From Adineta vaga (lineage: Eukaryota > Animalia > Rotifera): a DNA stretch of 64,000 bases. The stretch covers positions 15,314,001 through 15,378,000 of the forward strand of contig CP075493.1 of assembly GCA_021613535.1 (NCBI GenBank), given 5' to 3'. The position numbers and the translations under genes are program-made. This document shows positions 1 to 24,649 of this stretch, in pieces. Numbering within the stretch: the stretch's first letter is position 1; every line of letters begins with the position of its first letter. A model generated the notes under the pieces. That model had not been told where the DNA came from, searched no databases, and saw nothing but the letters and a program-made list of their open reading frames with translations.

Positions 1-617
<617 letters not shown>

Positions 618-1576: not shown

Positions 1577-3267
1577 TTATTCCTCTTTTTCGAAATCAAA
1601 CCGAATGATTCGATGATTTCCCCGATCTGAAACATAAAGATTTCCTTCAAAATCAAATGATAAACCTTGAAGATCATTCAATTGGTTTGATTCACTTCTT
1701 TCACCATTTCCACCAACAACAATCAAACCTTCTTCATCTCCTTCACACCATCGCATTATTCGATGATTCCCATAATCTGCCACATAGATTTGATTCCATT
1801 CATCAACAAACAATCCTTGAGGATAATTCAATTGATTGAGATTGTTTCCTTCACCATTTCCTCCAGCCACAACAATTCCTTCATTCGCATCTTTTCTCCA
1901 TTTCATTACACGATGATTATTCCAATCTGAAACATAAAGAGATTGATCTTTATCAACAAAGATGAAAGAAGGACGGTTCAGTTGATTTCCATTTCCATTT
2001 CCACCAGCAACTAATATTCCTTCTTGGTTTTCATTAATATTTTCTAACTTCCATTTTCTCACTTCATTCTTCTCTTCATCAGAAACATAAAGAAATCCAT
2101 GTTGATCCATTGTTAAACCATAGCAACCAATATTTTCGATGAGAATTTGTTGTTTTTGATCTCGTGACAATCGAATCACTCGGCTGTTCCCTTGATCAGC
2201 AATGATGAGCGAATGATTATGTTGATCAACAATCACATCTGTTGGTCTGTCTAACTGATCTATTCTTGTTCCTTGTCCATTTCCACCTGCAATGATTTGT
2301 CCTTGGTTTTCATCACATTTCCATTCAACAATACGATGATTCCAACGATCAGCAATGAAAATGGTTTTGTTTTCATTGACAAAGATTCCATGAGGACTAG
2401 AGAGTTGATTTAATTGTCTTCCTTGTCGATTTCCTCCCGCAACAATTTTTCCATTTTGTTGAAATGTTGATTCTAGAAAATGGAGAGAAAAATGCAAAGA
2501 TTTCTCTAGGATAAAGACGAATCTTCTTTTCTTTTTCGAATATTTGATTTAAGAATGCGTTTTCTTTTCCAAGAAAAATAAAGAAACTTTACTTTTATGT
2601 TGAATTGATGAACTTTTCGTTATTAAATCGTTAAAATGATTTGTTGGTGATAGTTGTGAATTATCTGATGAAAAAAGAAATTCAAAGAAAAGTTTTTATT
2701 AATAAATTTTCAAAACATAAAGATTCGATGATTTTATTTTCACTTACTCTCTGATAAAACAATTGAAATTTCCTTAATAAATCCTTGACGATGTTTTCGG
2801 ATTGAAACATTTGATGGTTTGTTCAATTCTTCACTCATTTTCCTTAGCTTTTCTCTTAAATCATTTAAATCAATTTCATTGAATTCATATTCTTGTTGAA
2901 TTTCTTTGATTTGTTCACTTAACTCATTTAATTTTTGCTGGATGTCTTTAAAAGACGTTTTGGAGTATTCTAAAACACTTTGTCGACATTTTCCGGCTGT
3001 TTGTTGAATTGTTCGAATTGATTTTCTTTCCCATTGATCGATTTGTTTGATCAATGAATGATTTAGTGGATTTTGTTTTTCATCGTTCATCTTATGTCTA
3101 AATCGATCATAATCATTGATAAAAACATTTAATTCTTCATTCAATAATTGTTGATGTTCATTTAAATCGGCTAGACAAAATTCCTTTGAACAACCTTGGC
3201 ATTGAGTTATAAATTTTTTATATTTTTTACATTTAAAACATTGTTTTGTATTATTTGCCATAGTCAT
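1577..3267 (-). CDS. NHL-repeat beta-propeller protein with N-terminal B-box-like Cys/His and coiled-coil region (3 exons)
   Basis: ORF 2740-3267 (CFKC..CQGCSKEFCLADLNEH plus coiled coil) and ORF 1577-2497 (repeated VAGGNG..QLNxPxGI..YVSDxxNHRV), joined through GT-AG introns. Confidence 0.9.
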
Positions 3268-6203
3268 TTGTGAGAAAAAGACGTTGTAAAACCGAAAATG
3301 TAAAGATTAAATGCTTCAAAGTCAACAATGATAAGATATGAAATACGTTGGAATATAAAGATGGTCGAGTCATATTTTAATATTATTTGATTCTATTTGT
3401 TTTGGTTGAGAATACGTATACATTAACTGTTGAAAAATCATCTGAAAGAAAAGAATGTATATTCGATCATTTTTGTCATATAGATATAGCGATAATTCTA
3501 CAATCTTGGCCATTTTTACAGAAATAAAAGAAACGTTTTGTAATTATAGTTTCGAATAACTCGAGTCACACAGTCGAATCGACATTCTCAAGTTTTTTAG
3601 TCTAGGTTCAGGTTGAGAGGGTATCTTTTATACCCTAATCCTTACACTAATTGACCAATTTCAACACTCTTCCATATATTAGAATGATTTTATCTCAAGA
3701 TAACATTAGAATATCGATAAATAAATCTCTTAAATTGATTGAAGACAATTCAATATACTAAAAAACCAAGAAAATGTCTGATAGATGATTATACTATTTC
3801 CCCTATTCGACAACTTACCGTTCAATCATAATTGTATGTAACGATATGTGAATCATCTAACCCTTTACCAGTCATTCTTTTTTCGTAGAATTGAAAAGCA
3901 TGTTTATTTACTTTGCTTGTTGAAACTTTGTATTTCATTTTCTCATCATATATTGATATGATATTTTTCAAAAGTGAATCGTTATAATATTGTCGTTTAT
4001 AAAATGAATGAATAATAAAATACGAGCGATAGACAACATCTTCTCAAACCAAATGTTTTATTAAATCATGGAATGAGTGTAGCATCTCGAAGTAAATGAA
4101 GAGTAGATTCTAACTAACGAACGGTTGTTGAAGTTTAGTAATAACCGGATCATCATTAAATATCATTTGACATGATAATTATGAAGAAAAGTTTAGTATC
4201 ATTTTTATAAAATAATATACTATCTATATTTATGTAAACAAATCTTTCTCTCGATAAAATAATCGATATTTCAATTTTTATCAATGAAAAATTTAATTAT
4301 ATAAATTACTGTCTGTTTTAATACAACTCTTCGCATTACTTCATCATACGTAATGCGAGAATAAACGATGTGCTTTTGATTTTAATGATTTCTTCTATTG
4401 ACGAGATTCTTGAAAAATGAATTGTTTATTCGAAAGATCGCATAACAATAATATATTCTACTAATCTACAAACAATCGAAATCATTAAATAAACAATAAT
4501 TTCTACTTTAAATTTATTAATATATTATAATTAATGTAATTGAAATATCACTTAACATTTGAATTTTATTCGTCATTGTTACATTTCATTTCTTGCTTTC
4601 ATATTAAATCTTAATAATAATTACACGATCATTCTTTCATTCAAATTGTATAAATCATAAAGAATAAAAACAAAACTTCTTGCATCAATGACGATATCTT
4701 CAAAACTTTGGAATTTATAGTTAAATAGTTTTTAATTCCTTTTTAAATATAAAGTAAATGATGTTTTTGTTTTGTTTTTATTGATCGATATTTATTTATA
4801 ATTCATTGAATGTTCATTTATGATAATTACAGACTAGATTTCCTCCTATCATTAAGAAATATTCGTCGAATCCATCCAATAGGCACTAAACGTCATCAAT
4901 AGAATATTTTTGACTGAAATTATATGTAAATACAACACACTTTTTACATTCATACAGTTCATCTTAAAAGTATGTAGAATGAACAGAAAGCGTATTTTAA
5001 TATTCATATTCATACCTAATGTCGTGAAATAACTTCAATTTGAAGTAATAAAAAGAATTTGTTTTCAAATAAGAATAAAAACATGAAATATTCATATCCT
5101 GTTGACGTTTTTTCTTTCACAAATTGTTGTTTTGAGTGTGGATAATTTGTTCTCTTATTTAAAATTATTTCTCTTCCAAGTTTCATGCCGTTTACGTGCA
5201 TAAAATGTGATACAAATACAAACAGATCTTTCTAGACAAATATAAATGAATAATGAACTTTTTTTAAAATTGATATGATTGATGTTGCAAAATTCGCAAG
5301 AGGAAGTAGAAGATTATTTATCTGTTGAAACAATTCTATGGGATCGATACAAATGTATTTACAAAGATAAAAAGTCATTAAAGAGTTAAATGATCTATTT
5401 AAAAACAATCAAATATTATCATTGGAATTGACTGGAAATATTTATGATGTTAAAAGCAGAGACGGGCGGTATGCGGTATGAAAGGGCTATACCGCACTCC
5501 CGCGTCTCCACTAGAAGAAGCCTTCTAACTATTATTTTCATTCGCGTTATATGTTGAAAGAGATTTAGCAAAGCTAATCATGTCCCAGTCTCTTATCCGC
5601 ATCTGTTTGAATTTCTTATCATTTTGTTGATAATGAACTATACACTTAATTAGACCCCAGAAAATCATATAAAGATGTTTAAGAGCCATCGTCATTGTCA
5701 TATATTAACGACCAATTGAGGTCAACAATTGCTGCAAGAGAACGGGTTTTATCATTTGCTTTTTGTTTTTTCTCGTGAATATTATTGTTAAATGAAAAGT
5801 GCAATCGTCAAACGATTCAACATTTTATAGAACCTAATGAGACTTAAGATGTTATTCTCGAGAATCAAAATTACGAAACGCATGCAATTATTTGCTAATA
5901 ATCATTTGGTTTTTTGTGAGGCTCGATATACATAGTATTTCTGCGAAAAATATTGACTTTTACTTCACATAAGAACTGCTTTACAACGAGTTCGTATATT
6001 TCATGTAGCACTATGTTTCTTAAAAAACATAACTGCGAATCATCTGATCGAAAAACTATCTAATTTTACTTTCATCTGAGACCTCATCATCTTCGAAAAA
6101 TTTGATTGCTGTACATAATCATCCGAGCACTGTTTAACACCTTAATTCTCATTCCTAAGAAAGAAAAGATCGATTAGTTCAAAAAATATATAAAGATGTA
6201 CAA

Positions 6204-7262
6204 CACTAATCGACGATCTTGCCCTGTTCTTTCCAGGTTCTTGTTTTTCTTGACCTTCAGACATGATTCTTTTTCTATTCCTTCCATACAAGATTCTTGC
6301 CTGAAAAATATGATCTTGCTTTTCTGGTAAGGTTCTTGTAGACCGAATCTTGTCTGATGAGGCAAGAATATTTTTTCAGACAAGATTCTTGTTCTCTTGC
6401 TTTCTTGCCTGATTCTTGGCTTTCTTGAACTCTTGCCTGCATCTTGCTTTTCTTGTTATTCTTATCTTTCTTGTCTGATTCTGATCAAACTAAAAAGCCT
6501 TTATAGATTGTTATTACTATCTTTTTATATTATTTTATTAGAAATTTGCACGTCATTCACAAAAAATGGTAAGAATACAAAAAAATATGTCATCTTATTC
6601 GTAAAAAGAACACCTGTTCTTTTTAAAAGAATATAATCTTTCCAGGATACATCTGAAACTTTCATCGTTCATTAAACAAGATTTTTTGTAGATAATTACA
6701 GAAAAATCTAAAAATAAAATAAAATAGAAAGATTAAGCACAAAAATATTGAAATACATTTGATAAATTCAATTTATTTAAGAAAAATAATATGAAATAGC
6801 ATTACTTACCATATTCTTTCGTCGATCAAATAAATATTTTACTTACATTTAATTGAGATATAGTGTTGTCTCGAAAGATTATATCTGAGAAAAGTACATA
6901 TTTGGAGTGAATTGTAATAGTCATTAAATAGAAAATGAATGAATAACGTTCAGATATCACTTTATATATGTTATATACAAAGAATACATCACGTGCCGTT
7001 TATCTTGGGAAGGTAGCAAGGATTTTTTTTCGTTCATACTATAAGAGTCTTGTCTGAATTCTAAGAAATTTAAAATATCTTGTGTTTCTTTCCAGATTCT
7101 TGTTGTTCAGGATATTCAGACAAGATTCTTGTTATCTTGAAATTCTTGTATGATTCCTTTTACTTTTCTGTTGAAAAGAATCTTGTCTGAACACAAGAAT
7201 CTTGCCTGAAAAATAAGAAAAATAAGAATCTGGAAAGAATAGGGCAAGATCGTCGATTAGTG
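6204..7262. mobile_element. Non-autonomous CACTA/CMC-type DNA transposon (~1.06 kb)
   Basis: Terminal inverted repeats CACTAATCGACGATCTTGCCCT(G/A)TTCTTTCCAG at 6204 and its reverse complement ending at 7262; AA on both flanks (candidate 2-bp TSD); many subterminal CAAGATTCTTG/TCTTG repeats; no transposase ORF. Confidence 0.8.
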
Positions 7263-7505
7263 AACCATTTACTATGATAATGATTTCGCGATCAGATATT
7301 GGCAAGTCAACGGCTTTTTGACCCAAACAAGTAAAAATCGATAACTGAAAATTTCGAACAGATCAAGTCAAGTTACATCTCGAAAATCTTCGAGTTTAAG
7401 TTAAGTCACAAGTCATTTGACTCGGCTTAATTTAAATTAATTCGAGTCGAAAAACGACTTGGCTTACCATCTTTAGAGTAAATTCACCCTACAAGTTTAT
7501 CCTAT

Positions 7506-7565
7506 TGGGTGTGGGTGTGGGTGTCTCTTCGTCTTCAACACCCACCCACCCACCCACACCCTCAA
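7506..7565. repeat. Telomere-like palindromic element
   Basis: TGGGTGTGGGTGTGGGTGT-ctcttcgtcttca-ACACCCACCCACCCACCCACACCCTCAA. Confidence 0.85.
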
Positions 7566-7757
7566 TGTGTGAGAGACGGTACAGATTATATGCGTTTTTG
7601 TAAATGCGTCGAAAAGAATTCTGTTCTTGTTAATAGAATTCGAAGAATTATTTAGTGCTCTGTGTTTCTTCTGAGGGTACAAAATTCTGAATTCTGGTCG
7701 GTAGGCATTCTGCAGCCCCTAAAAAATGTGTCAGTGTGAGTGTGCATTTCGAAATGA

Positions 7758-9174
7758 TCAATATAGTTCTGCACTGTCCAAAGGCCAACCATTATCGTTC
7801 TCCCCACCAGTAAGTAATACCTCTCCACTCGCTAATACGGATGCTGTGTGTGAAGCTCGTGCATCACACATGTTACCAATCATTGTCCAGTTTCCTCTTG
7901 ATGGATCATACAGCTCGGTGCTGTATCGAACATCATTACCATAATAGCCTCCGCCAGTAACTAACACTTGTCCATTCGTCAATACAGATAGTGTATGGTC
8001 ATATCGAGCATCATTCATACTGCCAGTATTGGTCCAGATCCCTGTTAATGGATCGTACAACTCAGTACTTCTTTGAGGATTAGCAGTATTGTCTCCACCT
8101 GTAATTAATACTTTTCCAGTAGGTAATACAGATGATTGGTGCCCATATCGTGCACTATTGATGCTACCAGTAACTGTCCAAGTTCCTGTTAATGGATCAT
8201 ACAATTCAGTACTATTTACGGGCTCAATATAATAATCAATTATAGCGCCACCGGTAACTAATACTTGTCCATTTTTTAAGACGGATGCTGTGTGGCCAGA
8301 TCGTGCATAATTCATCCTACCAGTCATTGTCCAAGTACCCGTTGCTGGATCATATAATTCAGCACTATTTACGGATTTCATAGTTTGAAGGTATCCACCA
8401 GTGACCAACACTTTTCCATCTACTAATACGGATGCCGTGAAAGAAGATCGTCCACAACTCATACTGCCAGTAACTCCCCAACTTTCTGTCAATAGATCAA
8501 ACAACTCAGCGCTCGTTTCACCGGCTCCACCGACAACCAAAACTTTTCCATTCTTTAATACGGATGCTGTGTGAGCTACCCGGGCAACATTCATACTACG
8601 AGTAATTGCCCACGTTTTTGTAAGTGGATCATACAACTCCGCACTGTTGTGAATATCAGTATGATTTTCTCCACCAGTAATCAGTACTTTTCCATTTGCT
8701 AATATGGATGCCGTGTGCGAGATTCGTGTATGATGCATAGCACTGGTACGAGACCAGCCTAGACAGAAATATTATAATGTAACTATCCTGCGAAGAACGT
8801 TTTTCGGTTAAAGCATCAGACAGTAAGGTCAATCATAGTTTCATGCTCACTCGTAAAAAATGGCAGTCTTCAAGCAGTCACTCATACTACCGTCGGGTCG
8901 CTTTGAAGGAATTGCCGATGCAGCAACTCCATAACGTATTGACAAGCAGCATTTTAGAACGCTCGAGAAGATAAGTCGAAATCATACCTGGCTGTTTCGT
9001 GGTGATTATAGTTCCAAACGGTGATTTTTTCGCTGATAACAGTATCGAAGATAACGCGCCGTCGACGGCGGTTTTCTGCTTTGTCGTTGTAACACTGATG
9101 GACACCAATACCAGACAGAGAACAACTGCAAAAATCGTTAAAACAATCAAAGACACACATGTGATTTTGACCAA
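7758..9174 (-). CDS. Kelch-repeat protein (bacterial-type repeats) with probable N-terminal membrane-anchor exon; 5' end uncertain
   Basis: ORF 7758-8738 with ~7 repeats HTASVLxNGKVLVTGG..SAELYDPxTGTW; upstream exon ~9174-8988 encodes a hydrophobic helix (CVSLIVLTIFAVVLCLVLVSI); donor near 8987, acceptor near 8760. Confidence 0.8.
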
Positions 9175-9189
9175 ATGGCGCCATTACTA

Positions 9190-9481
9190 CACTCTAAGGA
9201 GAAATTTCAGTCTACCGAACCTTTTTAAGATCGGCGGGACTAAAAAACGTTCGGTAACGAAAATACAAGACCAGCTAGGTTTCGTATCAAACCATTAAGG
9301 ATTCGCCTTAAACCTAGATGGTTTTGTATTTTCCTTACCGAACGTTTTTTAGTCCCACCGATCTTAAAAAGGTTTCGTAGCTAAGGTTCCGCGATTGTAT
9401 CCAGGGGAAGAACTATTTTAGGTTCCGTAGCTGCTGCAGAACTTAAAAAGGTTCGGTAGACTGAAATTTCTTTTTAAAGTG
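9190..9481. mobile_element. MITE-like element with ~40-bp TIRs and an internal long palindrome
   Basis: CACTCTAAGGAGAAATTTCAGTCTACCGAACCTTTTTAAG ... CTTAAAAAGGTTCGGTAGACTGAAATTTCTTTTTAAAGTG, flanked by TA on both sides; 9203-9281 is also the inverted copy of 9310-9380. Confidence 0.8.
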
Positions 9482-9990
9482 TAGAGTAAGCCGTCGATAT
9501 GGGGAGACAGCAAACGAAGAGATCAGGCTTTCAGCGTTTCGATAGCTCACTTAAGATACGGAATCTTCAAACTTCACACTAGATTCTTGTTTTCGAAAAA
9601 TACTTTTCTCGCAATCCAGCAACTCAGAGATAAATAAATCTCAAATCATTGTCATCTACGCGCTTATATCTCAGCTGGTGCGTCGCCATCTTTAAATCCC
9701 TACTGTAACCTACGATTTCGATTAAAGTACTTACTGCATGTATGCTTGCCGAACATATTATATTAGAAAAAAGATTTCGATTCGAAAGAGAACGAGCAAC
9801 TGATGAAAGCTACGTTACATTTATATCTATATATAACGCAGAAGAATTGCAATAGATAATATTATCGTCAAAGAAAAAGGTATCAGTATGTTCTTATCGT
9901 TATACTGGACGGGCTGAAAGTCGCTTTACCGAGAAAAAGCTGCATATATATTCGGCACGACCAGATCAAACGACCTCCTCTTTTCACCAG

Positions 9991-10075
9991 GAGGCTGTGG
10001 GTGTGCGGAAGTTGATCTCTTCCTCCCACGCATACCCTTCGCCCTCATCCTCGCCCACACCCCCACCCCATCCTC
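9991..10075. repeat. Telomere-like palindromic element (degenerate)
   Basis: GAGGCTGTGGGTGTG ... CCCACACCCCCACCCCATCCTC. Confidence 0.65.
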
Positions 10076-10187
10076 TTTAATTATGAATATTCTCAATGTA
10101 TGTGCAGAACTTAGTTATCGGTAACAATCGGTTGATACTCGATCAAGAACGAAGCAGTACTCACTTCTCCGAAGAGAACGTCACCTT

Positions 10188-10247
10188 TGAGGGTGTGGGT
10201 GTTTCTTCTCTGCACACACCCACACCCACACCCACACCCTCACACCC
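10188..10247. repeat. Telomere-like palindromic element
   Basis: TGAGGGTGTGGGTGT-ttcttctctgc-ACACACCCACACCCACACCCACACCCTCA. Confidence 0.9.
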
Positions 10248-10394
10248 TTTTCTGTGAATTGATTTGTAAGATCATTGATTTTTCAAGACAAAGTTTCGAA
10301 TATTTATAAATAAATTAGCAATCGATTTTAAAATGAAAATTTGTTTTGAAGAAGAAAAAAGAAATTAAAAATGATTTTTTCTTCGATTTGAAAT

Positions 10395-10800
10395 TCAAAA
10401 AGAAATTTGAATTTCTTTTCTCAATTTGATCATTTTTACCAACAAATCATTGAATCCGTTTAACAAGAGCAAAAGAAATGTTCTCATATTCAGAGAATCT
10501 TTGTTGAATAAAAGAAAAAGAATTTGAATTTCTGAACTATAAACACGTAATGAAAGCGCAATAAACGGTGAATGTTTCGGAACTAAAGGATATATCAATT
10601 GATGACGAAGACATCGATTTCAATTGAGAATTCTCTGACATTCTAAATGGAAATTACAGAAAATAATCGAATTCCAAGATGAGATATTGAATGAAGTGTT
10701 GTACTTTGATTAAGTTCGGAATGATTTAAATCTTCATCAGGAATTATTTTGATCAATTCTCGAACACGTTAAATATTTCCACTTCGACAAACACATTTTT
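10395..10800 (-). pseudogene. Degenerate ankyrin-repeat gene fragment
   Basis: Manual translation CRSGNI*RVRELIKIIPDEDLNHSELNQSTTLHSISHLG is ankyrin-like and carries an in-frame stop. Confidence 0.5.
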
Positions 10801-11066
10801 CAATTAAAGTGTTTAATGTATTATTCATGATTTATTTTGTAATTTAAGAAACAATCGAGTGTGATATTCACACAATTATTTATGCTTTTCTTTGTTTTCA
10901 GTTTTTCATAGAAAAAGAAATGTTTGAAATTACTACTAATGAAAATAATCGTGATTAAAGAAAAGAACAAGAACATATTTAAATAAAAGTATTGTATGTT
11001 CTTTACTAATTGGTTTATTTTATCTATCACCGAAAATCAACCAAACCTGATTTACGTCCAACTATT

Positions 11067-11119
11067 TGAGGGTGTGGATGTGGATGAAGACAAGATTATT
11101 ACTCACACCCACACCATCA
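11067..11119. repeat. Telomere-like palindromic element
   Basis: TGAGGGTGTGGATGTGGATG-aagacaagattatt-ACTCACACCCACACCATCA. Confidence 0.85.
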
Positions 11120-11833
11120 GGTACTAATTATTCATTCATACTCTCTCTTACACGTTTTATGAATTTGTTCATGTATAGATGCTAACCAAACTAAATGTTG
11201 TGGATAATGAAATCGAAGGATAACTCTTCCATTGATTTTTTCATGAAATAAATTTTGTGGAATGAATGAAGGATAGTATACATTTGATTACATTTCCACT
11301 CACCCTTCAATATAATCAAATAAATCATTAAGAAATAAAGTTACACGGTTGTGCATTCAAATGATTTGGTTAACTAATATATTTTTATTCTTACAAGCAT
11401 ATTGAAAGATTCTAAACATCAAAAATTCATGAAATATGTATGTAAATATTTTTGGCTTATTCTCTGATTTTTCCCTGTTCTATTAAAACACACGTTGATT
11501 TACAGGTAGAAATGTCAAAGAACTGAAAATTGATCAATGTACTCGTTATTTTTTCTTTTTCTTTCGTCTGTCAACTCCTTTCAGTTTTTTTCCCAGTTGG
11601 AAAAGAAATCTACATTATGACTCATGAGAATTGACTCATTGGGCTTTTACTGAGAAAAAACACAGCTACTTACAAATAAAGATTGTTAGAATTTCCCTAT
11701 ATGTTGCATATTAGTTTTTCGTCTGGACGAAGTAAGTAGTATTTATCTCATCTTTACCATTTGCAGATTTAATCCAAGAAGAAGTATTTTATAGATATCT
11801 TAATAATAATCTTTTCAAAAATTGAAAATCAAA

Positions 11834-13929
11834 ATGAAAGACAAAATACAAGATACTGAAATACCAAAAATTATTGGAAAACCTGATTTAACAAAACCGT
11901 TAGCAATATCATATGTATCTCTTCGATGCATTAACGAAAACGATCGTGTCATAGCTGCCGATCATAATGAATTACTGATGGAAAACTCCACCAAACCAAT
12001 CAAGGAAAATGCTCGGTGGATAATCGCATATTACGATCCATTATGGGTTCTGATCAATCATGCTACTTCGATGTGTCTTATTTTCGATACAAAGAATAAG
12101 CATATTAGCAAGCCATTGAAAGTGAATGATGGTCATCGCCACTTGTTACTTCAATTGTCTTCCAAAACTTCTAAAGATAATCAAATCGCATTTGAATTAC
12201 TTGACGAAAACAATCCTGAGAGAAATGCTTCCATTATCTTTTTCGTTTTCGAAGGTTTGCAACAAACATTTCCTGCTATCGATCCTGATTCAATCAGTAA
12301 TTTAACAGCTAATCCTAAGGTTAAATCTGTTGCTAACATAGTTAACAATTTCTTTGATTATATTGTCATTGGTTCTTCGTTTTGTTCTTTGGCGTTTATT
12401 CAACAAACGAAGAAAAACAACCCGAAAGCAAAAATACTTGTCTTGGAAAAAGGTTTGAAATACTTATCGAAACATCATCAACATTGTCCTCCATGTTCAT
12501 CTTCTCCACGAGATGTCGAATCTCGACCCTGGACTATTTGTAGTGAAACTACACAGAATGAATTTATCAAGAATCTACATGGTCAAATACCATTTCAAGG
12601 AGGAAGATCGACCTATTGGAGTGGCTGGTGTCCAACACCGTCAACAAAAGAACTCACCGGATGGCCAGAAAAACTAAAGACTCAATTGCAAGAGACATAT
12701 TTTGATCTGGCACGTCGATTTCTTGGTGTTATTATGGCAAATGAAATACAAGCGCTGGACAATGAGAATAATTCGATATATCATACATTTCAAGCTTCTC
12801 TCAAGCAGCGTTTAGATAGTGCTACAAACATCGAATCAATTAATGAAGTTATGCATGCTCCTCTCGCTATGGGCAACAATCAGTAAGTTTAGATTTGAAA
12901 TTTTCTGTAACTATTTACAGTATCCATATTTATTTTCTTAGATTGATCAAATTTTCCACTGTGGAAACATTAGAATCTATGGAAAATGTCACTATCATTC
13001 ATGATTGCACAGTGGAACAAATCTTGCATAATGGACAAAGAGCAACAGCACTACAAACAAATCAAGGAATTATCTCACTTCATAATGACAGTAAGCTGAT
13101 CTTAGCAATGAGTACATTGCCTGCAACGACACTCGTACTTAATTCTTTTAAAATGGCTGAATTTCCTCGACTTTCAAATGTTGGAAAGCGATTTACAGCT
13201 CATTTTGTCAGCTCAGTAATAGTACGCGTACCTCGGCCTCGTCCATCATTAGCAGTCAATGCGTCAGAAGTCGAATTGGCAGCAGTCTACATTACAGGTA
13301 TGAAAGGCGATGCACAATATCATCTTCAATTATCTGGAGTAAATTATACACAACATACAAATGATATATATATTCATGAGATTTGCAAGAAATATTCAGC
13401 GAATTCAATTCCTAAAGAATGTATCGATACATCGAAGGGCTATGTTGTAGTATCATGTTCAACATTAGGAGAACTGGACTATAAGAATCCAAAGAATCAG
13501 TTTAATTTGATCAATACTACTAACGGAGAATTAAAGCTTCACTTGAATGAACAGGACAAAGAATTATGGGACTGTATGGATAATAAAACATTTGAAGTTA
13601 TGAACAAACTTTCATCCGATCCAAACAATAACGATCTTGAATATTGGCATGAAACTGATAAAACTTGGAAAAAAGATATTCCTCTATCAGACGAAATACG
13701 TAAACCCTGGATTGTTCATGATGCTTCAACAATGTGGATTGGTGATGATGAAGATATTGAAGCATCAGTAGGACTTGATTATCGTCTCCATGGTATAAAT
13801 AATGTTTATATCACTGGAGGCGCATTATGGCCTACTGGTGGATCATGGAATCCTGTTTTGACAATTGTAGCTATGGCAATACACTTAGCTAATACTATTT
13901 ACAACGAGTCTAAACGTATAGTATGCTAA
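11834..13929 (+). CDS. GMC-family (pyranose-oxidase-like) FAD oxidoreductase with N-terminal extension; intron 12883-12941
   Basis: FDYIVIGSSFCSLAF..ILVLEKG (Rossmann-like), GGRSTYWSGWCP, VHDASTMWIG, NVYITGGALWPTGGSWNPVLT; an in-frame GT-AG intron joins the two ORFs. Confidence 0.85.
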
Positions 13930-15122
13930 CAGTAAAACGTTTTAATCATAATGTATATCTAGTTTTATTCCGACAATGGAATTTTTATGAATCTTGTTTA
14001 TATCAGATCTGAAAATATTTTCATACTATGTATGTCTATTCTGTTTAATTATTAATAAAATTATTTGTAATTCATAAAATCTTTGTTTCACTATTCTATG
14101 CTGCAATAAGAATTCCTTCACTAAAGATAAAGAGAATATTTTAGAAGTAAGTAAATCAAAGGTATGTTTGATAAATTGGATTTCGTCTAAACGTTGTTCG
14201 ATATACTTCGAAACCTTGATTAACAATTGTTAGAAGAGAACGTTTTTTTTTCAGTTTACGTGCTCTTTTTCTCTTCATTTTATATGAATTGATATAGGAA
14301 AAGTTATTTGTTGGGTTTTTTTCCCAAGGTCATAAAAATCCATTTTGTACGAACTATATTGAACATTTTCAGATCAATTCTTATAGTTTCACGGTTAGAT
14401 TTTTATTTATAAATCAAATCAAATTTTACAATTTCATCTTTTCGCTTGCCCTCACTCACATCAACGCATCACTCGATCATTTCTACATGTACTATTTTTT
14501 GAACATTTTTCCTATGTGAAACAAAATTCTGACATATTTCAGATCTGACTTGAACTATATGAAGAAAAAGAATTTCAAAAAATCGAAGACATGAGTGTTT
14601 ACCTGAAAAGTACATGTAAAAATATAAGTAAGAATCAATATTAGTTGCTGAAAGATATTTTGCTGCGGATATTCCTGATCATATCGTATTTATTGTTTTC
14701 ACAATCATCTTGTTGGAATAGTTAAAAAGTTTTATTAAAAAAAAGAAGAGCCTTAATGACATATTAGTAACAATCTTAAATATTTGTGATATGAATACAT
14801 GCTCACACTTGGAAAAAGCTGTCATATATTCTTTGTTTATAGTACATTAATAATGTTGCATGATCGTTAGCCCGACAAATCGATTTGTTCCTTGAAAATG
14901 AGTTGCATTTTTAATCTATAGTGTTTACCTAAGCATTAATAAATCAAAGGCGGAAAAGTGTTGTTAATCCATTAAAATAATATAATATCTGTTTTCTCTC
15001 ATCTTTTTCATCAATTATTTCCATATAAAAAACTTGGAAAATTGTAAAGCAATTATATTGTTTTATTCTCTTAACACAACGAGAGACACAGCTTCACAAA
15101 TCATAAAGCGAGAGTGATATCG

Positions 15123-16058
15123 ATGTTGCAAGATGATTCTTCTTCGCGATGGCGAATGACTGTATTTGGAATATTACTAACTGGTGAAGTATTATGTATT
15201 CCTTGTTACTTATTTCTCCTTTGTCATTTTATTCGTGAGAAAACTTTACGAACAAATCTTCAAAATCATTCGATTATTCTTTTATTAATCTATAATTTTA
15301 TTCAAGTGGCAATTGATCTATCAATGTATTTGGATTTTTGCCGACATGGATATTATACTTTATTCTATATTCCTCTTTGTTATCTACAAGCCTATGTGGA
15401 TTTTGCATTTTGGTATGGCGCTCTTCATATAATGTGTTGGATATCCATCGAACGACATCTCTTTATCTTTCATTCGAATCTTCTTCGAACAACACGTCAA
15501 CATATTTTATTTCATTACATTCCACTTGGATTCGCTTCAATTTATGCACCAGTTCTTTATTTCTATTTGATTATTTTATATCCCTGTAAACCTATCTATG
15601 ATCCATATTCATTTCTTTGTGCTGTTTTCTGTTATAATAATTTAACTCCCGAATGGTTTCCACAGTTTGAATTAATCGCGAATTATATTTTGCCTATTGT
15701 AATAATTGCGGTATTTAGTTGTAGTTTATTTATTCGTGTTCTCATACAAAAACGTCGTTTAAAACAAGCAATTGATTGGGGTCGTCAACGAAAAATGATT
15801 ATTCAATTAGTATTAGTTTCAATGATCTACCTTGCTTTTTATCTGCCTTTTGCTATTGCTTATATTATACCGTGGTTTGGAATTAGTTTTTTTAATAGCA
15901 ATACTTTCACAGAGTACGCCCTGATATTTACGTACACTCCTGGAATTCTAATCTCTTATGCGAATCTACTTGTTTTACCTCAATTGAAACAGAAATTTCG
16001 TGCAATAATGTTTTGGAAAAAACAAGCACGGGGAACTGTCGTTCCGTTCAGAAGATAG
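15123..16058 (+). CDS. Rhodopsin-like orphan GPCR (single exon)
   Basis: Seven hydrophobic segments; WISIERH (DRY-equivalent); RQRKMIIQL before TM6. Confidence 0.88.
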   Translation: MLQDDSSSRWRMTVFGILLTGEVLCIPCYLFLLCHFIREKTLRTNLQNHSIILLLIYNFIQVAIDLSMYLDFCRHGYYTLFYIPLCYLQAYVDFAFWYGALHIMCWISIERHLFIFHSNLLRTTRQHILFHYIPLGFASIYAPVLYFYLIILYPCKPIYDPYSFLCAVFCYNNLTPEWFPQFELIANYILPIVIIAVFSCSLFIRVLIQKRRLKQAIDWGRQRKMIIQLVLVSMIYLAFYLPFAIAYIIPWFGISFFNSNTFTEYALIFTYTPGILISYANLLVLPQLKQKFRAIMFWKKQARGTVVPFRR

Positions 16059-16716
16059 ATTTCAAATTGAGTCATATTTACCCCCAGTAATTTCATTTAC
16101 TAGAATGAATGTGGCTTTTAATATCACTTACTCTTTAGTGCGCTCTCACCGTCACCTACCGGTATCTTCAAAAAAAGTGTTGTTAATTCATTAAACTAAT
16201 ATAATGTCGCTTTTCTCTCATCTTTTCTTTTAAATCTATTTTAATCAAAATATCGAAAATAGTCATGTTTAACTATCATTACAATTATATTGAGGACTTT
16301 GAAAATTTTACAAAGTTTATTATTTGATTTAGTATAACTTGTCGTATATTTCAATTTAGTTCTGTCAGAATTGTATTTTTTCAGGTATCTTTTTGTTAAA
16401 AATCTGTTTTGTATAATAATTAGAATCGTAGATTCTATTTATGGAATTTTTTCATATATTTGCAAAGACAATAATACCCTATATCAATGATGAATTCGAT
16501 AAACAATAGATTAAAGCTTCGTTAAAATATAATTAAAATTGAAAAGAATGGTTAAATTTATTATTGGACATTCAAAGAGTGCGGAATAGAAATAAAATTA
16601 ATAACTTATACGATAGAGGACACTACTGGCTGGTGATTCGTCAACATTCCAATTTATATATTAGAGTCATTACTAGATTAATAAGCCCATATTTACTAAA
16701 CATCTGATCAACGTCT

Positions 16717-16783
16717 AGCCAGCACCTCAGCACCCATCCAGCACCTCAGCACCCAGCCAGCACCTCAGCACCCAGCCGGCACC
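16717..16783. repeat. Tandem 19-bp GC-rich repeat (~3.5 copies), possibly a transposon subterminal remnant
   Basis: (CCAGCACCTCAGCACCCAG)n followed by a partial inverted copy GGGTGCTCAGGTGC. Confidence 0.75.
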
Positions 16784-17648
16784 TACCATCATTTTTGGGT
16801 GCTCAGGTGCCCGCACTTTCCCCCTTGAGTGAAAATTAAACAAACAAAACTTGTATGTATTCAGAGTATTGAGTCATGCTTGGAAAAAAACAGTAGAGGA
16901 AAGAGAACAGAAATAATGTACATGCATTCAAAGTATTTACAGATGCTTGGAAAAAGCCAATAAAAGAAACAGAATAAATACCCAGTAAATGCGACGATGT
17001 GGTGCATATATGGTACCATATCCATTGTGAGGGTTGGCGAACAACACAATCTTTTTTTACCCATTTATCATTTATTCGTGTTTTCCAGTCTAATAAAAAG
17101 AGCTGTGAACAAGTTAACCAGAAAACTATAAGTTTTACGACATTACCTTTCACAGTAAGTAAAGAAAACATTAACAATCACTAAATTCCGTATAATTTCA
17201 AACAACTTGGGTAAGTCAGAAGGAAATGATTCGATGATCTTTTCTATTTCAAATTGACTTTTGAAAAAGAACTGGATCTCTCATCTAATAAAAGATCTAA
17301 CAAAACAACATCTTTCACAATGGCAGCGACCAGACATATTACATTACATACGAAATCAGCATTAGATTCGAAAGTAATTGACGCGGTCTCACACTCACAT
17401 CCCTCCGGAAAAAAGTCAAATCAATTGCTAAGATATCAGAAAAAGACAGAAAACGCACTGCTTTAGTGTCTTTTGTTTGATGTTATCTGAAAAACAATTA
17501 GAAACCCTGTAGACAATAAAGTATAGTTCAATCAGTGCTAAAGTTCTTCTCTCAAAACTCAGCACACCTTTTGTAGTTCAATCTCTTATTTCTATACATC
17601 CTGGGAAATTATAACTATATTATCTTTTAGATCTTCAAATAGAATAAA

Positions 17649-20600
17649 ATGCAACGTATATCTAATGATTTGAACGAAATCAAAAGGAAGTTAGCACGCA
17701 ATCCACATCATAAAGGACTACAATATGCATATACATCCGGAAAAAACAAACGCAGTCCATGTGTAGCTAGTATACTGCTCGTTGGATTAACTGGTGCTGG
17801 CAAATCTTCTACGGTTTGTGATGAACAGATCATTTTCTTTTCTATTGTATAGTTTACTAAGTTACTTTAAAAACTAAATAGTCTTCGAAAAATATTTTAA
17901 ATTAAGACAAAAAATTGAGCATTTTTATTGAACTAAATATTTAGAATTATATATTAATTGATTTCATCATTTTGTATTCTACTCAAAGATATTTATTTTT
18001 TCCTCATCAATGTTTATAAAGAACGGATAGAGCTTTTAAAAATATTACGAATTTAAACAATTAATCAACTTGTGATGTAAATACAAGTATCTTTCTATAT
18101 TTATGGCAATGAAATTGAGCAAAATAAAATGTCATTCGTATTTCGCATCTTTCGAACAATACATTTTCATTCACTAAATTTTAGGGGTCTCATCAGATGT
18201 GCACAAATGTGCAGGTGAGCGTACGAAGTGAGGTCAACATGATTCGTTTTTGTTTCCAAACAGTGGTACATCTATGATTTTTGCTAAGAACGATCAAAAA
18301 TACTTTCTCGAAGGATGGGCTACATGAGTTTCATTAAGTTTTCCTATTTTGCACGAGAATATTTCTCTTAGGAAGCTATCTTTGAGATATACCTTCATCA
18401 GTTATATAGCTAGTTTAGTCTAATCCATTTTTATATTGTTTCGAAGCTAATTGCTGTAATTGCTTTTAGTTAAATATGTTGTTTAACAACAAGAATCTAG
18501 CTGACGTTGGAGACAGCTGTTCATGCTCATCAGATATTATTGAATATGAAGTACAGGTTCCTGTTCGGGAATTGGACGTCGAGAACACAGTTCTTCGAAT
18601 CATTGATACACCTGGATTTGGAGACACAAGAGATTCTGATTTCGATGCTCGGTTAATTGCAACACTTAAGCACTACTTTGAATCACATAAAGACTTCGCA
18701 TCTGAACAAGTTCCAACAGTGGTTCTTATCACAGCTGGGTTTACAGATAATAGATTCGAAGGAGAAACTTCGGCTTTTGTTAAAATGCTCAAAGGATTAA
18801 AAAGCATGGAAAAAAGCATATTTGACGTACAAAATTCCAATACTATGTTACTATTGACGCATTTTATGAGTGGAAAACCCAGCGAACGTAAGCATCCGGA
18901 AAATAAATGCTCATCCATTGGTGCAGTTCTTCATCAGTTTATTAATTTACCAAAACCCATTATTACAATTTTGGCAGAAAATGAAGCGGTTGATTTTGAG
19001 TTGCCAAAGCAAAATGGTTACTTTAAGCTACCAAATGGAGAATTTTATCCTTACAACTTATTTCAAGCAATTCAAACTCTTACTACTAAATCAGGAGATG
19101 TTATGGGAGAAACAATAATACGCACTGCTTTCAAAGACATAAAGGCATTTGAAATTCAAAAACGAAAAATAGAACTCTTAAAAGTTGGATCACAGCTTGT
19201 GAATAGTGCTACAGAAGTTATGAATCGAATAACGTTTAATATTACTAAAACAGAAATAGCGGATAAGTTATATTCATGCTGGAACAATATGAGCTCATCC
19301 GAACGTAATGATTGTCCAGGTACACTGGAATGTATACAAAGAGTCTTCGAAAGAAAAGGAATTTGTACAATGGCACAATTACCGAAAACCGAAAGTGAAA
19401 TTCTTAATTTAATGAAAGAAATTCCATCAAATTATGTTGTTCCAAAATTACTGGAACAAGCACTGGGAATCAAAGTTCCTAAACTAAACTTTTCACCTGT
19501 TGTCGGTTACTGTTACAGTATTATCAATGACTGCACGATTCCTGCATCTATTTTTAATTTAGGAACAACCTATATCTTGTCTCCAATTGGTTATATGATG
19601 CCATCAGAATTTGTGTGTGATGTATGTTCTGAAACAAAAGACGCTTGCCAATTTTTCAATTCTGACAATGAATATATCAATGCCAGATTAAGTGACCTAA
19701 ATGTAATTGGACAAGTCAATGCTAATGCATTCAAGTTTAATATCAACGTTCGAGCAGCCAAGGGTTACAATATTATTAATAAGAACGCTGAACGTCATGT
19801 TAACACCACATTTACTTCACTTCGTGAATATCGACAGTTTCGACTAACCTTAGCAAGTGATATTGAATTGAATTCCGATTTTGTGTCTGCAATACAACGT
19901 TTGCCAAAGTTTGAATTGAACAATTCGAACTCTGTAGCACAATTTACAGAGTTCTTTCAAAGATTTGGAACTCATGTTGTGACATCGTGTTTTGGTGGTG
20001 GAGCAATTGAAATAGAAGCCTCCGTAGAAAATGCAAACACTACTATAAATATGCAAGATTTAAGAAGCTTGGTAGGTCAATTAAAAGCTGGTTTTTCAGA
20101 CAAATTCAGACTAGAAGTGGATGCTACATACACTAATGGCTATCAGTACACATCAAGAAGAGATCTCACAAATATACATTACTCTACTTCCTTCAAAGGG
20201 GGAGATATCATGTTCCATCTTCAAAACCCCGATGGAAACTCACACGAAACAGTCATTGAATATAAAAGAAAATGGATTGAGTCTTTGACTACTCAACCCG
20301 TGATGTTGAATACAGATATGAAGATAGTTCCTGTAAGCTACTATGTGAGACAAAAGAACCAAAATACAGCAGAAAATATTGATCTGGCTTCCCAAAAGTT
20401 ATTTGAAGCAAATTTAAAGTATACAGCACCACCACCACCACCGCCGCCGCCTCCAAGACTGGAAGTTCAGGCTCCGTCGCAGCCGAGTAGTGGTTGTTTG
20501 AAAGCTGGTACTTTAATAATGTTATCCGATGGACGTAAATTACCAATTGAAATTATCCGTTCAGGAGACATGGTATTAGACATTAATTTGAAGCCTTGTA

Positions 20601-21445
20601 GAGTTATTGGAGTTAATCATATGTTTATGGATGGCAAAAATTTGTATGGATTTTCGAAAAATAATTGCTTCTTTACAGGTGGTCATATTTTTGTACAGAA
20701 TAAATCAAATGACTTTTTCGTTATTTCAAGACAAGAACTTTTAAAAGATAATCCTTTCATGGATAAATTAAATATTATTGAAGTCCAATCTGGTCAATCG
20801 ATCGAAGTAATGAAGTTAAAAGATGAATCTGGCATGCAAAATATTGTTTGTGAAACCGTAACAATTTTTAAAGATGAAACAGAATATGATGCTGCAGTTC
20901 CAGTATATTTTTTAATTGTTGAGAGTGCAACTGGTACTTATATTGCAAACGACTATGTTTGCCGTCATGAGTTACCAACATTTGAATGCTGGCCTAATAC
21001 ATTAGTTTGTCTTCAAAAAATTTTCACTTCGAACGTTGTAAAGCAAAACTCAATTGGAAAAAAATTGTCTCCATCAGAACTATGTCAAATAGAGAAAATA
21101 GCAGATTACGCTGCCAAACAATTGAAGAAAGAATTTTTACCAAAACATGGTACATTTTTTAATGATATTACAAACACAGAACATGATAGCACTGCAACAG
21201 AATTGATTGTAAGTGAAATGTCACTTTATTTGACAACATTATTGGAAATGACTCATGATAATTATTGGTCAGCTTTTGGAATGTTGATTTATGGTCGATG
21301 TGGATACCTCATACGTGATCTTCTAGATAATCAAAAAAAGAAACCAGTGTCAAGTTCGATACTTGCTGATTTTATCATCAAATCTATTGAAAATTTTTAT
21401 ACAAATACCTTATTGAGGGTGAGAGATGGCGACATTAATATGTGA
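17649..21445 (+). CDS. P-loop GTPase (AIG1/septin-like) - MACPF - polyPro - Hint - C-terminal tail fusion protein, ~1046 aa; exons 17649-17813 and 18470-21445
   Basis: G1 GLTGAGKSST spliced in frame to LNMLF; G3 IIDTPG; MACPF signature FGTHVVTSCFGGG (~19964-20002); Pro9 linker; Hint blocks SSG|CLKAGTLI (Cys at 20495), FFTGGHIF (TxxH), VPVYFLIV, TYIANDYVCRH (His at 20966). Confidence 0.88.
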
Positions 21446-21464
21446 ATATACTATCCTCACCCAC
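21414..21464. repeat. Telomere-like palindromic element (degenerate) overlapping the last codons and stop of the MACPF-Hint gene
   Basis: TGAGGGTGAGAG ... ATCCTCACCCAC. Confidence 0.55.
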
Positions 21465-21698
21465 TTTTGCTTATTCACTTGCTTACATATCTTTTTTTTT
21501 TGAGAATTATTATTAATCGTTGCTTTTTATCGAAATAAACTAGATTGTGTAGTGTAAGAAACGTTTGTATAGTTTATGTCGACTTTTTTGTTTTCAAATA
21601 TGAACCCATCACTCAATAGTATTAGATTAATCTATAAAAAATGAGTAAAAATATAATACAGTATCCATCTATGTACATACTAATGATCACGGATAAGA

Positions 21699-22522: not shown

Positions 22523-24649
22523 TTATTTTTTCACTTTGATTGGAGTTGTAGTTAGCTGTTGTTCATGCTCAACTGGTGGTCGAACGATGTTTTTCGGTTC
22601 AACAGAATCATTAGTAATATCACTTGGATTATTCTTATTTAGCTTTCCTGAAATTGCCTCTAAAACCACTAAAAGATCGGTTTCTATTGTACTAAAATCA
22701 CCGAAAGTATCACGATAATCATAAGCTATATTATCGTCTACCTGAAGTATAGTGTAAGCCTTCTCTAATCTTTCTTTTAAATCTTGCAATTTTCGTCGTC
22801 GATCTCGAATATAATCATCTTCAGCAAGATATTTATCAATCAAATCGCATCGTTGAATAGCAATTTGTCGTAGACGTTGTCGTACATTAGGACATACAGC
22901 AAAAACACATCCTGCGCGTAAAGATAGTGTTACATAGTCAATAAAGCGTTTGATCAATAAATGCCAATATGAATATATACTAATTAACATTTGTTTCACT
23001 GCTTGATCATCTGTAGAAATTGCTGCGAATAACAATTCATCATCCTCTTTATCATCAGTACCATCCGCAATGCAAAAACTTGTAGGTGCTGTAGTCGGTT
23101 CATTTCGCTCTAAAGGTCCTTTATATTTTTCTACGAAATCCATATAAGACGTATTAATTGTATATGGATCATTTTGATCCAATTCAATTAATTCTTTTAA
23201 TTGACTCAAGACGACTTCCTTTTTCTCATTCATATATGTACAGGTAACTTGATGAAATATACGTATAATTTTTGACAACAAAGCATTGTCCTTACACGCA
23301 TCTTCTTCCTCTTGCGATAGTTGATAAACTGTTGTAAGAAAACAGTCGTTAATAAGTTTGTTTGTAGCATCCCATAATTGATCAAGTTTATCACATATGA
23401 ATTGTTTCAACATAGAGCTACAATGAAAGTTTGGTAATTGCTCACCAGAACATTTAACCAATTCTTGTTGGACTTTTACACGATATTCATTTGAAAATAA
23501 TTCTCTCCGTTGTTTTCGTATATTTTTTCTGAACGTTACAAACTTTTGATGCAAAATATTTATTGTGCTAATACGTTCTCCACGATTTGAACCCATAAGT
23601 CGTACTTTTAGAATTTTTTCGACGTATGCATCAACTAGTTCATTGTAAGCTGTTAAACGTGCTGCAGTTGTTCGTAGATCTGGAGGCAATTTCGATATTT
23701 GTTCATCGACTTCGACTAACTGAATCTGTATGTTGTGTCTAATATTTGGAAATGTTTCCTTGACATGATCAGAATACAAAACTGTTAAACGATTAATCAA
23801 TGCATCAATACCAAGACAGTTTTGTGGAACAGAAAGTAACGCTGGATGTTGATTGAAAAATTCTTGTTCACGATTGCGTGCATCTTCTAAGGAAATATTT
23901 TCGTCTGTGCTACGATTACGAACGGCAACAAAACCTAATTTCAAACGAGTTACATCGTGTCTATTCATTAGCAGTTGTTTCACAAGCGTTTCCTGGTCAG
24001 TAGCTAGATCGGATTTTGTGATAACACCAATTGTTCGTTTTCCTGATGGATCTACTTCACGTGCTAATGACAATGATTCAACCGTTGCAATATCGACGTT
24101 AGCAGGAAATACACATAGAATAACACTACCTTCTTGACTAATATATTTCTTAATTAACTTGATTGTTTGCGTATAAATATCTCCTGGTTGATCACCCATA
24201 GGATAGCGTGCAATACCAGGTAAATCGACAAGTGTTAAATCACGAACATGAGGATCTTCAACTTGTAATTCAATCAAATCTTGAACAATATTCTTATTAT
24301 TACCAGCTAAATGCCTGGTTTCTTCTTCGATATATCGTGGCATAATCAAATTTGCTTCATTCAATATAACTTTTCGATTACCATCATACACACGATATAC
24401 AGTTCGTTTACTAGATTTACGTAATCTTAATACTAATGGACATCTTGTTACAATACCAGAACCTTTAGGAAGTTCAACTAACGATAAAGATTCTAATAAT
24501 GTTGTTTTACCACTTGACTGATCCCCCACTACAACAACATTTGGAAAAATAATACCAGCATTGTCCATTGATAATAGTGGTCGAACTTGATCAATTTTAT
24601 CCATTAAAGGACGAATACTTTCATCATATGCTTTTGTAAATGTATCCAT
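22523..24649 (-). CDS. Mx-like dynamin-family large GTPase (single exon, 708 aa)
   Basis: VVVGDQSSGKT (G1), LPKGSGIVTRCPL, LVDLPG (G3), ITKSD (G4), middle domain and GED-like C-terminal helix; Mx-like N-terminus YDESIRPLMDKIDQVR. Confidence 0.92.
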   Translation of the reverse strand: MDTFTKAYDESIRPLMDKIDQVRPLLSMDNAGIIFPNVVVVGDQSSGKTTLLESLSLVELPKGSGIVTRCPLVLRLRKSSKRTVYRVYDGNRKVILNEANLIMPRYIEEETRHLAGNNKNIVQDLIELQVEDPHVRDLTLVDLPGIARYPMGDQPGDIYTQTIKLIKKYISQEGSVILCVFPANVDIATVESLSLAREVDPSGKRTIGVITKSDLATDQETLVKQLLMNRHDVTRLKLGFVAVRNRSTDENISLEDARNREQEFFNQHPALLSVPQNCLGIDALINRLTVLYSDHVKETFPNIRHNIQIQLVEVDEQISKLPPDLRTTAARLTAYNELVDAYVEKILKVRLMGSNRGERISTINILHQKFVTFRKNIRKQRRELFSNEYRVKVQQELVKCSGEQLPNFHCSSMLKQFICDKLDQLWDATNKLINDCFLTTVYQLSQEEEDACKDNALLSKIIRIFHQVTCTYMNEKKEVVLSQLKELIELDQNDPYTINTSYMDFVEKYKGPLERNEPTTAPTSFCIADGTDDKEDDELLFAAISTDDQAVKQMLISIYSYWHLLIKRFIDYVTLSLRAGCVFAVCPNVRQRLRQIAIQRCDLIDKYLAEDDYIRDRRRKLQDLKERLEKAYTILQVDDNIAYDYRDTFGDFSTIETDLLVVLEAISGKLNKNNPSDITNDSVEPKNIVRPPVEHEQQLTTTPIKVKK

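Follow-up and report, generated by a model that had tools for sequence, protein, structure and literature searches.

A bdelloid rotifer gene joins a GTPase and a MACPF domain to a putative self-processing Hint-tail cassette

Introduction

What is a MACPF domain doing between a GTPase and a Hint domain in a single polypeptide? The question is raised by a gene at positions 17649–21445 of the stretch of the Adineta vaga genome analysed here (hereafter the window: 64,000 nucleotides, positions 15,314,001 to 15,378,000 of contig CP075493.1, assembly GCA_021613535.1; all coordinates are those of the window, forward strand, unless stated). The known MACPF pore formers are weapons of the secreted or luminal kind, and their activation comes from outside the molecule. 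An initial annotation, made from the letters of the DNA, had proposed an intracellular pore-forming protein that processes itself, in which the Hint domain would release the GTPase-MACPF part from an inhibitory tail or lipidate its C-terminus, and the GTPase would control targeting or oligomerization.

Here we establish the structure and expression of the gene, the folds and catalytic residues of its product, and the modularity of its C-terminal cassette, which consists of the Hint domain and a helical tail. The proposal is partly supported by these results: the features that can be computed for such a protein are present, and the cleavage, the adduct, the pore and the role of the GTPase are predicted from sequences and models. 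On balance, we favour the reading in which the Hint domain cleaves before Cys731 and frees the GTPase-MACPF part from the Hint-tail part.

A spliced and transcribed gene

The A. vaga GTPase-MACPF-Hint gene is genuine and transcribed. Its product is the 1046-residue protein I4U23_005057 (named 'hypothetical protein'; P0001), and the translations of exon 1 (17649–17813) and exon 2 (18470–21442), each matched to P0001 separately, correspond with 100% identity to residues 1–55 and 56–1046, respectively; whole-protein analyses were run on P0001 as the database entry. The coding exons are separated by a 656-bp, phase 0 intron with GT..AG ends (17814–18469). Exactly 656 bases with these ends are skipped, between 17812/13 and 18469/70, in Logan contigs of two studies (run X1 of study P1 and run X10 of study P5), and the intron is retained in the DNA run X8, which covers the stretch. 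The spliced open reading frame (ORF) of the initial annotation, including its junction of exon 1 to 18470, is thus seen in transcripts (17813/18470 in contigs X1 and X10). The X10 contig, 3368 nt in length, spans the entire coding region to 21519 and argues against MACPF and Hint never sharing a transcript.

By Kyte–Doolittle hydropathy, P0001 has neither a signal peptide (N-terminal maximum of −0.67 in a 10-residue window) nor a transmembrane segment (maximum of 1.33 over the whole protein in a 19-residue window), and the claim of an intracellular protein stands for A. vaga itself.

The Hint domain

The Hint domain comprises residues 731–890 (20495–20974) and was delimited by profile, by AlphaFold2 (AF2) modelling with Foldseek and VIA searches, and by hidden Markov model (HMM) alignment. 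Its first residue, Cys731 (20495–20497), follows Gly730, and its TxxH block is T791-G-G-H794 (TGGH, 20675–20686). Searched exhaustively with HMMER, the C-terminal 329 residues of P0001 gave 118 relatives, from which a 28-sequence alignment was drawn and used as a profile against the sequences of the Protein Data Bank (PDB). The best match was BIL2 of Tetrahymena (6y75, E 6.4e-10), followed by PI-SceI, Prp8 inteins, a Clostridium BIL domain and Sonic hedgehog. The AF2 model of the same 329 residues has a predicted local distance difference test score (pLDDT) of 86.4 and a predicted template modelling score (pTM) of 0.82, and agrees with the profile: Foldseek returned 6y75 (E 4.9e-8, probability 1.00), and VIA-align gave Z scores of 16.6 for BIL2 (6tmm), 15.0 for the Clostridium BIL domain (2lwy) and 14.2 for Hedgehog (1at0), with 28 Hint structures at Z ≥8 (range 16.6 to 9.4). 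P0001 has no match to the Hedgehog Hint profile PF01079.

The residues required for the first step of Hint chemistry are retained. In an HMM alignment of 167 related domains, in which only domains covering a given position were scored, the first Cys is kept in 134 of 134, the TxxH His in 140 of 140 and the TxxH Thr in 133 of 140. The conservation of Cys1 and TxxH suggests that formation of a thioester at the bond before Cys731 is preserved. The Gly|Cys start of the Hint domain, noted in the initial annotation, is present as Gly730|Cys731 together with the TxxH block and the fold, but Gly at position −1 is not a feature of the family, Ser being the commonest residue there among related domains. 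These counts also bear on whether the Hint domain could be a relic that no longer processes anything, the protein acting as an uncleaved GTPase-MACPF scaffold. Such a relic would be in keeping with the weak Pfam scores of the domain. However, catalytic conservation persists at 20–35% overall identity, across bdelloids, springtails, a choanoflagellate and metagenome members, and invariance of Cys1 and of the TxxH His at this degree of divergence, with near-invariance of the Thr, is the pattern of retained catalysis; we regard a relic as improbable.

The opposite end of the domain differs from that of an intein. It reads ..YVCRHELP, with His occupying the intein Asn position: in the HMM alignment of related domains, bacterial members end in His-Asn, versus Arg-His followed by Glu-Leu-Pro in the present Hint-tail family, and the combination of a C-terminal His-Asn with a following Cys, Ser or Thr, as in inteins and A-type BIL domains, does not occur in the family. 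Since the intein C-terminal Asn is replaced by His, only a Hedgehog-like cleavage, N-terminal to the Hint domain, is expected.

This end of the domain also separates the A. vaga protein from bacterial polymorphic toxins, which place a Hint domain just ahead of the C-terminal toxin (PMC3417536). By that analogy, to which the bacterial multi-BIL proteins among the distant Hint relatives lend some weight, the Hint domain would free the tail as an effector and the MACPF domain would serve as the delivery pore. Yet His has taken the place of the Asn on which cleavage behind the Hint domain depends, and the junction RHELP-x-F-x-x-WP does not vary, so that the tail would remain joined to the Hint domain; moreover, the tail is conserved rather than polymorphic, and is folded with the Hint domain. 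An arrangement of the toxin type is accordingly the least credible of the explanations considered, and we give it hardly any weight.

The tail and the Hint-tail cassette

The tail comprises residues 891–1046 (20975–21442), 156 residues against the ~160 first estimated, and forms six helices in the AF2 model. It opens with the invariant motif P-x-F-x-x-W-P, and several further tail positions are invariant from rotifers to springtails. In the model, Hint and tail pack as one unit (pTM 0.82 jointly). The tail has no Pfam family of its own, only Hint families appearing across all 28 members of the alignment; a fold search (VIA wide) reached a best Z of 5.8, to spider-silk repeat domains, well below the chance level for helical bundles, and a protein-atlas search with the tail gave a best score of 0.81, within noise.

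The distance from Cys1 to the C-terminus is 305–324 residues in bdelloids, springtails, the choanoflagellate and most metagenome members, and what precedes this unit varies. In bdelloids, Rotaria among them, it stands behind GTPase-MACPF. In the springtails Orchesella dallaii (P0011) and Folsomia candida (P0126) the order is crystallin(beta/gamma)-GTPase-MACPF-Hint-tail (1387 aa), and the partial record of Orchesella cincta contains MACPF and Hint only. For Salpingoeca punica, a choanoflagellate, and for metagenome proteins, the cargo is MACPF alone. The cassette is also found behind a matrixin metalloprotease in Orchesella, behind TSP1 repeats, and behind small Cys-rich domains that bear signal peptides. 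Members with cargos other than MACPF are P0010 and P0013 of Orchesella dallaii and P0024, P0030, P0044 and P0062 from metagenomes or unidentified sources; three Orchesella cassette genes share one 2.98-Mb contig. A word-index protein search, with the exon-2 product and with the Hint-tail region, returned bdelloid relatives only, and is too coarse for relatives at 25–35% identity.

A. vaga itself has a paralogue without MACPF (L002; C1:14668627–14670350, minus strand), located 0.64 Mb upstream. It consists of a P-loop GTPase (LIILGNSGVGKS), a coiled coil of ~200 residues, an intron, and a Hint domain that starts with CFTAGT and has TSEH as its TxxH block. The C-terminal stretch that follows is short, and the family profile matches it only into its first residues.

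We note two points of annotation among the relatives. The bdelloid orthologue models P0002–P0005 (from Rotaria and others) are 728–977 residues in length and are without the P-loop exon or more of the GTPase, probably because a short first coding exon, separated by an intron, was missed. On one springtail contig the crystallin ORF is separate and upstream (L011:1441–1926).

In sum, Hint and tail behave as one conserved processing cassette, which may be a functional counterpart of the Hog unit of Hedgehog. Because a cassette of constant length follows unrelated cargos, the tail more likely serves the Hint domain than the MACPF domain. This weakens the inhibitory tail of the initial annotation and, with it, a gasdermin-like mode of action, in which the helical tail, together with the Hint domain, would hold MACPF or the GTPase inactive until self-cleavage by plain hydrolysis, leaving no adduct. 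Several properties of the protein are as such a mode would have them: the catalytic residues are conserved, a disordered linker lies ahead of the cleavage site, the signal peptide is absent, and a helical domain at the C-terminus is reminiscent of the gasdermin repressor domain. Nevertheless, a cassette that also follows matrixin, TSP1 and small secreted domains, and a coiled coil in the paralogue, argues against an inhibitor fitted to MACPF, and the full-length model (pTM 0.45) shows no confident contact between MACPF and Hint-tail; a complex prediction of MACPF (395–705) with Hint-tail (731–1046) scored 0.00 and weighs neither way. We consider the gasdermin-like mode doubtful, if the most serious of the rivals to cleavage that serves the Hint-tail chemistry itself.

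The MACPF domain and the linker

The MACPF domain spans residues ~400–703 (19502–20413) and is supported by Pfam, by the family profile and by Foldseek. Pfam MACPF (PF01823) matches with 56.6 bits (cut-off 21.5; E 5e-15). The signature FGTHVVTSCFGGG (19964–20002), pointed out by the initial annotation, retains the Gly-Thr-His core and the correctly spaced Gly-Gly of the consensus [YW]-G-[TS]-H-[FY]-x6-G-G, and deviates from it by Phe in place of Tyr/Trp and by Val in place of Phe/Tyr; the signature core is invariant among family members. The family profile matches perforin-1 (3.5e-13), and also complement proteins of the C6–C9 group (C6, C8 and C9) and MPEG1; Foldseek with the model returned perforin (3nsj, E 3e-13) together with MPEG1, Plu-MACPF, TgPLP1 and insecticidal MACPF proteins. 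Sequence profile and structure thus concur on a perforin fold, a bent central sheet with two helical clusters. The strongest hydrophobic/polar alternation in the whole protein occurs at residues 470–484 and 595–616, in the two MACPF helical clusters, as expected for segments that refold into membrane beta-hairpins.

The MACPF domain is followed by a disordered linker (20414–20494; pLDDT ~31 for residues 710–730), which contains the run of nine prolines noted in the initial annotation, at 20429–20455. The last residue of the linker is Gly730, immediately preceding the predicted scissile bond.

The GTPase domain and the helical middle region

The GTPase domain, residues ~36–290 (17754–19174), is interrupted by the intron and is assigned by Pfam and Foldseek to the TRAFAC class, closest to Toc34/AIG1. 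Both motifs reported by the initial annotation are in place, G1 as the P-loop GLTGAGKS (17784–17807) and G3 as DTPG (18605–18616). Two Pfam families pass their cut-offs, MMR_HSR1 (32.3 bits versus 21.9) and Septin (27.6 bits versus 26.2). AIG1 (PF04548) stays below its cut-off for P0001, with 24.3 bits versus 27 over the first 66 profile positions only, and NCBIfam gave nothing for P0001 beyond generic GTPase models under threshold. The nearest solved structures are Toc34 and Toc33 (Toc34 1h65, Foldseek E 1.8e-8, TM score 0.58–0.63 on the target). Together, profiles and models suggest a relative of the AIG1/Toc 'paraseptin' clade that falls outside AIG1 as Pfam delimits it.

Between GTPase and MACPF lies a helical region, residues ~297–390 (19193–19474), defined from the secondary structure of the full-length AF2 model (mean pLDDT 78.7) and without a Pfam match in P0001.

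Proposed mechanism

The favoured reading can be put as a sequence of steps. Cys731 would attack the Gly730-Cys731 bond, and an N-to-S acyl shift, aided by Thr791 and His794, would yield a thioester. Splicing would not follow, the intein C-terminal Asn being absent; instead, either water or a small nucleophile that the tail brings into position would resolve the thioester. The predicted products are a GTPase-MACPF part of 730 residues (~82 kDa) and a Hint-tail fragment of 316 residues (~36 kDa).

The individual claims in this scheme differ in strength. Cleavage is likely, and that the MACPF domain forms pores is probable, if less so. A role in cell-autonomous defence or cell death is plausible, though we would not yet back it. 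Resolution of the thioester into an adduct, rather than by hydrolysis, is possible but seems to us the lesser prospect; it is worth testing because the tail accompanies the Hint domain whatever the cargo, which fits a role in the reaction, and because the freed C-terminus would lie ~30 disordered residues past the MACPF domain, at the usual site of a membrane-binding domain. An adduct at this C-terminus would stand in for the membrane-binding domain of perforin, MPEG1 and other MACPF proteins, which is missing from the A. vaga protein. The GTPase, as a member of a clade that dimerizes or oligomerizes on membranes, would set the site and timing of MACPF ring assembly; by analogy with its GIMAP, Toc and septin relatives, we infer that it may control membrane targeting or assembly.

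In its most elaborate form, the scheme becomes a self-anchoring cytosolic perforin: the cassette would join the C-terminus of GTPase-MACPF to a lipid, a sterol or a membrane-resident nucleophile, giving it the membrane anchor for which other MACPF proteins have a dedicated domain, and GTP-dependent assembly of the GTPase would then nucleate pores. We consider this version unlikely. Were it true, one would expect the pores in a compartment that contains a pathogen or in membranes of the cell itself. Bdelloids and springtails would then share an executioner that is encoded by one gene and activates itself, comparable in role to gasdermins or to GBP/perforin-2 systems without being related to them.

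A number of observations weigh against the favoured reading. Pfam alone is marginal for the Hint domain of P0001 (Hom_end_hint, E 0.17, first 41 positions). The tail resembles neither the sterol-recognition region of Hedgehog nor any known lipid-binding fold in the atlas, VIA and Pfam searches. Some MACPF proteins form no pores. The G4 motif of the GTPase is atypical, LLTHF without Asp, which makes its nucleotide specificity uncertain; we take it to resemble the motif of Toc34. The full-length model places the domains relative to one another with low confidence (pTM 0.45). The springtail models start with segments that resemble signal peptides and, if correct, do not fit a strictly cytosolic mode of action across the family, such that the intracellular location claimed for the A. 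vaga protein does not extend readily to its springtail relatives; either the springtail members are secreted, or two genes were merged in annotation. Finally, cleavage and adduct are deduced from sequences and models for every member of the family.

Transcript ends, neighbouring genes and distribution

Upstream of the coding region the transcript contains a further exon. At their 5' ends, contigs X1 and X10 carry further letters that map to 17125–17154, the 3' end of a 5' non-coding exon of at least 135 nt in the transcript contig, of which only the last 30 nt are placed on the genome; the exon probably starts near 17020. An intron in the 5' untranslated region (UTR), with GT..AG ends, follows at 17155–17630 (donor GTAAGT at 17155; the contigs break at 17631). 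The start-codon exon (17631–17813) carries 55 codons (17649–17813), and since an in-frame TAG (17640–17642) sits in this same exon, the ATG at 17649 is the start. The last exon (18470–21550) contains the remaining coding sequence (18470–21445; 991 codons and TGA at 21443–21445) and the 3' UTR, the transcript contigs terminating at 21509, 21519 and 21550.

The gene lies on the chromosome-scale contig C1 of a genome of 100.8 Mb in six contigs. Beginning ~1 kb past its 3' end, and convergent with it, is a complete dynamin-family GTPase gene, an uninterrupted ORF of 708 residues (22523–24649, minus strand; Dynamin_N E 1.7e-42, Dynamin_M and GED); two genes for large membrane-remodelling GTPases are thus adjacent. 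On the other side are an ORF for a rhodopsin-type G-protein-coupled receptor (GPCR; 15114–16058, plus strand, 7tm_1 E 2e-7), an ORF pair (11822–13929, plus strand), the second with a GMC-oxidoreductase C-terminal domain, and an ORF for a Kelch-repeat protein (7758–8738, minus strand); GPCR, GMC-oxidoreductase and Kelch neighbours are ordinary animal gene content. Contamination is ruled out by the chromosome-scale contig, the two spliceosomal introns, and the flanking GPCR and dynamin genes.

The GTPase-MACPF-Hint layout is found in bdelloids and springtails, and the shorter MACPF-Hint-tail layout in one choanoflagellate. A tree of 17 MACPF-Hint proteins separates three groups (springtails; bdelloids; and the choanoflagellate with unknowns); being a quick and effectively unrooted tree, it is silent on transfer or its direction, as against an ancient origin with loss. 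A single peptide pattern searched against genomes of 185,579 prokaryotic species gave 41 matches, none of them confirmed, and revealed no prokaryotic donor of the fused gene. The patchy spread, over bdelloids, springtails, a choanoflagellate and unknown microbial eukaryotes, bears on gene transfer among the microfauna of soil and moss.

Discussion

The pairing of an AIG1-type GTPase with a Hint module has been published before; the initial annotation, in which no characterized protein of this architecture was known, agrees with the literature searched for the MACPF-Hint fusion and not for GTPase-Hint. GmGIN1 of Glomus mosseae, which has no signal peptide, is an AIG1-Hint/Hog fusion (PMC2362128), a further such fusion occurs among the AIG genes of the snail Biomphalaria (PMC7053062), and a CARD-AIG1-HINT protein of amphioxus is described as common to a few fungi also (PMC12373286). 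Like the A. vaga protein, all three combine an N-terminal AIG1/Toc-like GTPase and a C-terminal Hint module in one polypeptide; unlike it, they have no MACPF domain between the two. GmGIN1 has a Hog domain of the Hedgehog type, whereas the Hint domain of the A. vaga protein stands nearer to BIL domains and brings its own helical tail of ~150 residues. Literature searches for MACPF or perforin with Hint, intein, Hedgehog, bdelloid or Collembola, which covered few subscription journals, found no description of a MACPF-Hint fusion, and the cassette of a BIL-like Hint and a ~150-residue helical tail is likewise undescribed.

The proposed logic is that of Hedgehog and other Hog proteins. The Hint fold (Z 14.2 to 1at0), the N-terminal Cys, the TxxH block and the absence of a C-terminal Asn are shared with Hedgehog/Hog, as are a C-terminal extension that moves with the Hint domain and an exchangeable cargo ahead of a constant cassette. 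Unlike Hedgehog, the A. vaga protein has no PF01079 match and no signal peptide, and its cargo is a GTPase and a pore former rather than a secreted signal; its tail is twice the length of the sterol-recognition region of Hedgehog and unrelated to it in sequence. The best matches in both sequence and structure are instead BIL domains, including BIL2 of the Tetrahymena BUBL locus (6y75/6tmm). BIL2 and its bacterial relatives end in His-Asn, often occur in tandem and have no helical tail, whereas members of the Hint-tail family end in Arg-His-Glu-Leu-Pro and always carry the tail.

With perforin, MPEG1/perforin-2, C6–C9, TgPLP1 and the bacterial MACPF toxins, the protein has in common the MACPF fold, the signature and the two helical clusters. 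Those pore formers are secreted or luminal and possess a C-terminal membrane-binding domain (C2, P2 or beta-prism); in the A. vaga protein the signal peptide is missing, a GTPase precedes the MACPF domain, and a predicted cleavage site takes the position of the membrane-binding domain.

Gasdermins have an unrelated fold and do not cut themselves, their cleavage being the work of caspases or other proteases. The likeness to them would be one of function only, a cytosolic pore former parted proteolytically from a helical region at its C-terminus. Should the cassette cleave, it would represent a second, independent proteolytic route to arming a cytosolic pore former; should it add an adduct as well, C-terminal modification in the manner of Hedgehog would extend to an effector of immunity or cell death. 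As the cassette serves many cargos in several eukaryotic lineages, one biochemical result would explain the whole family.

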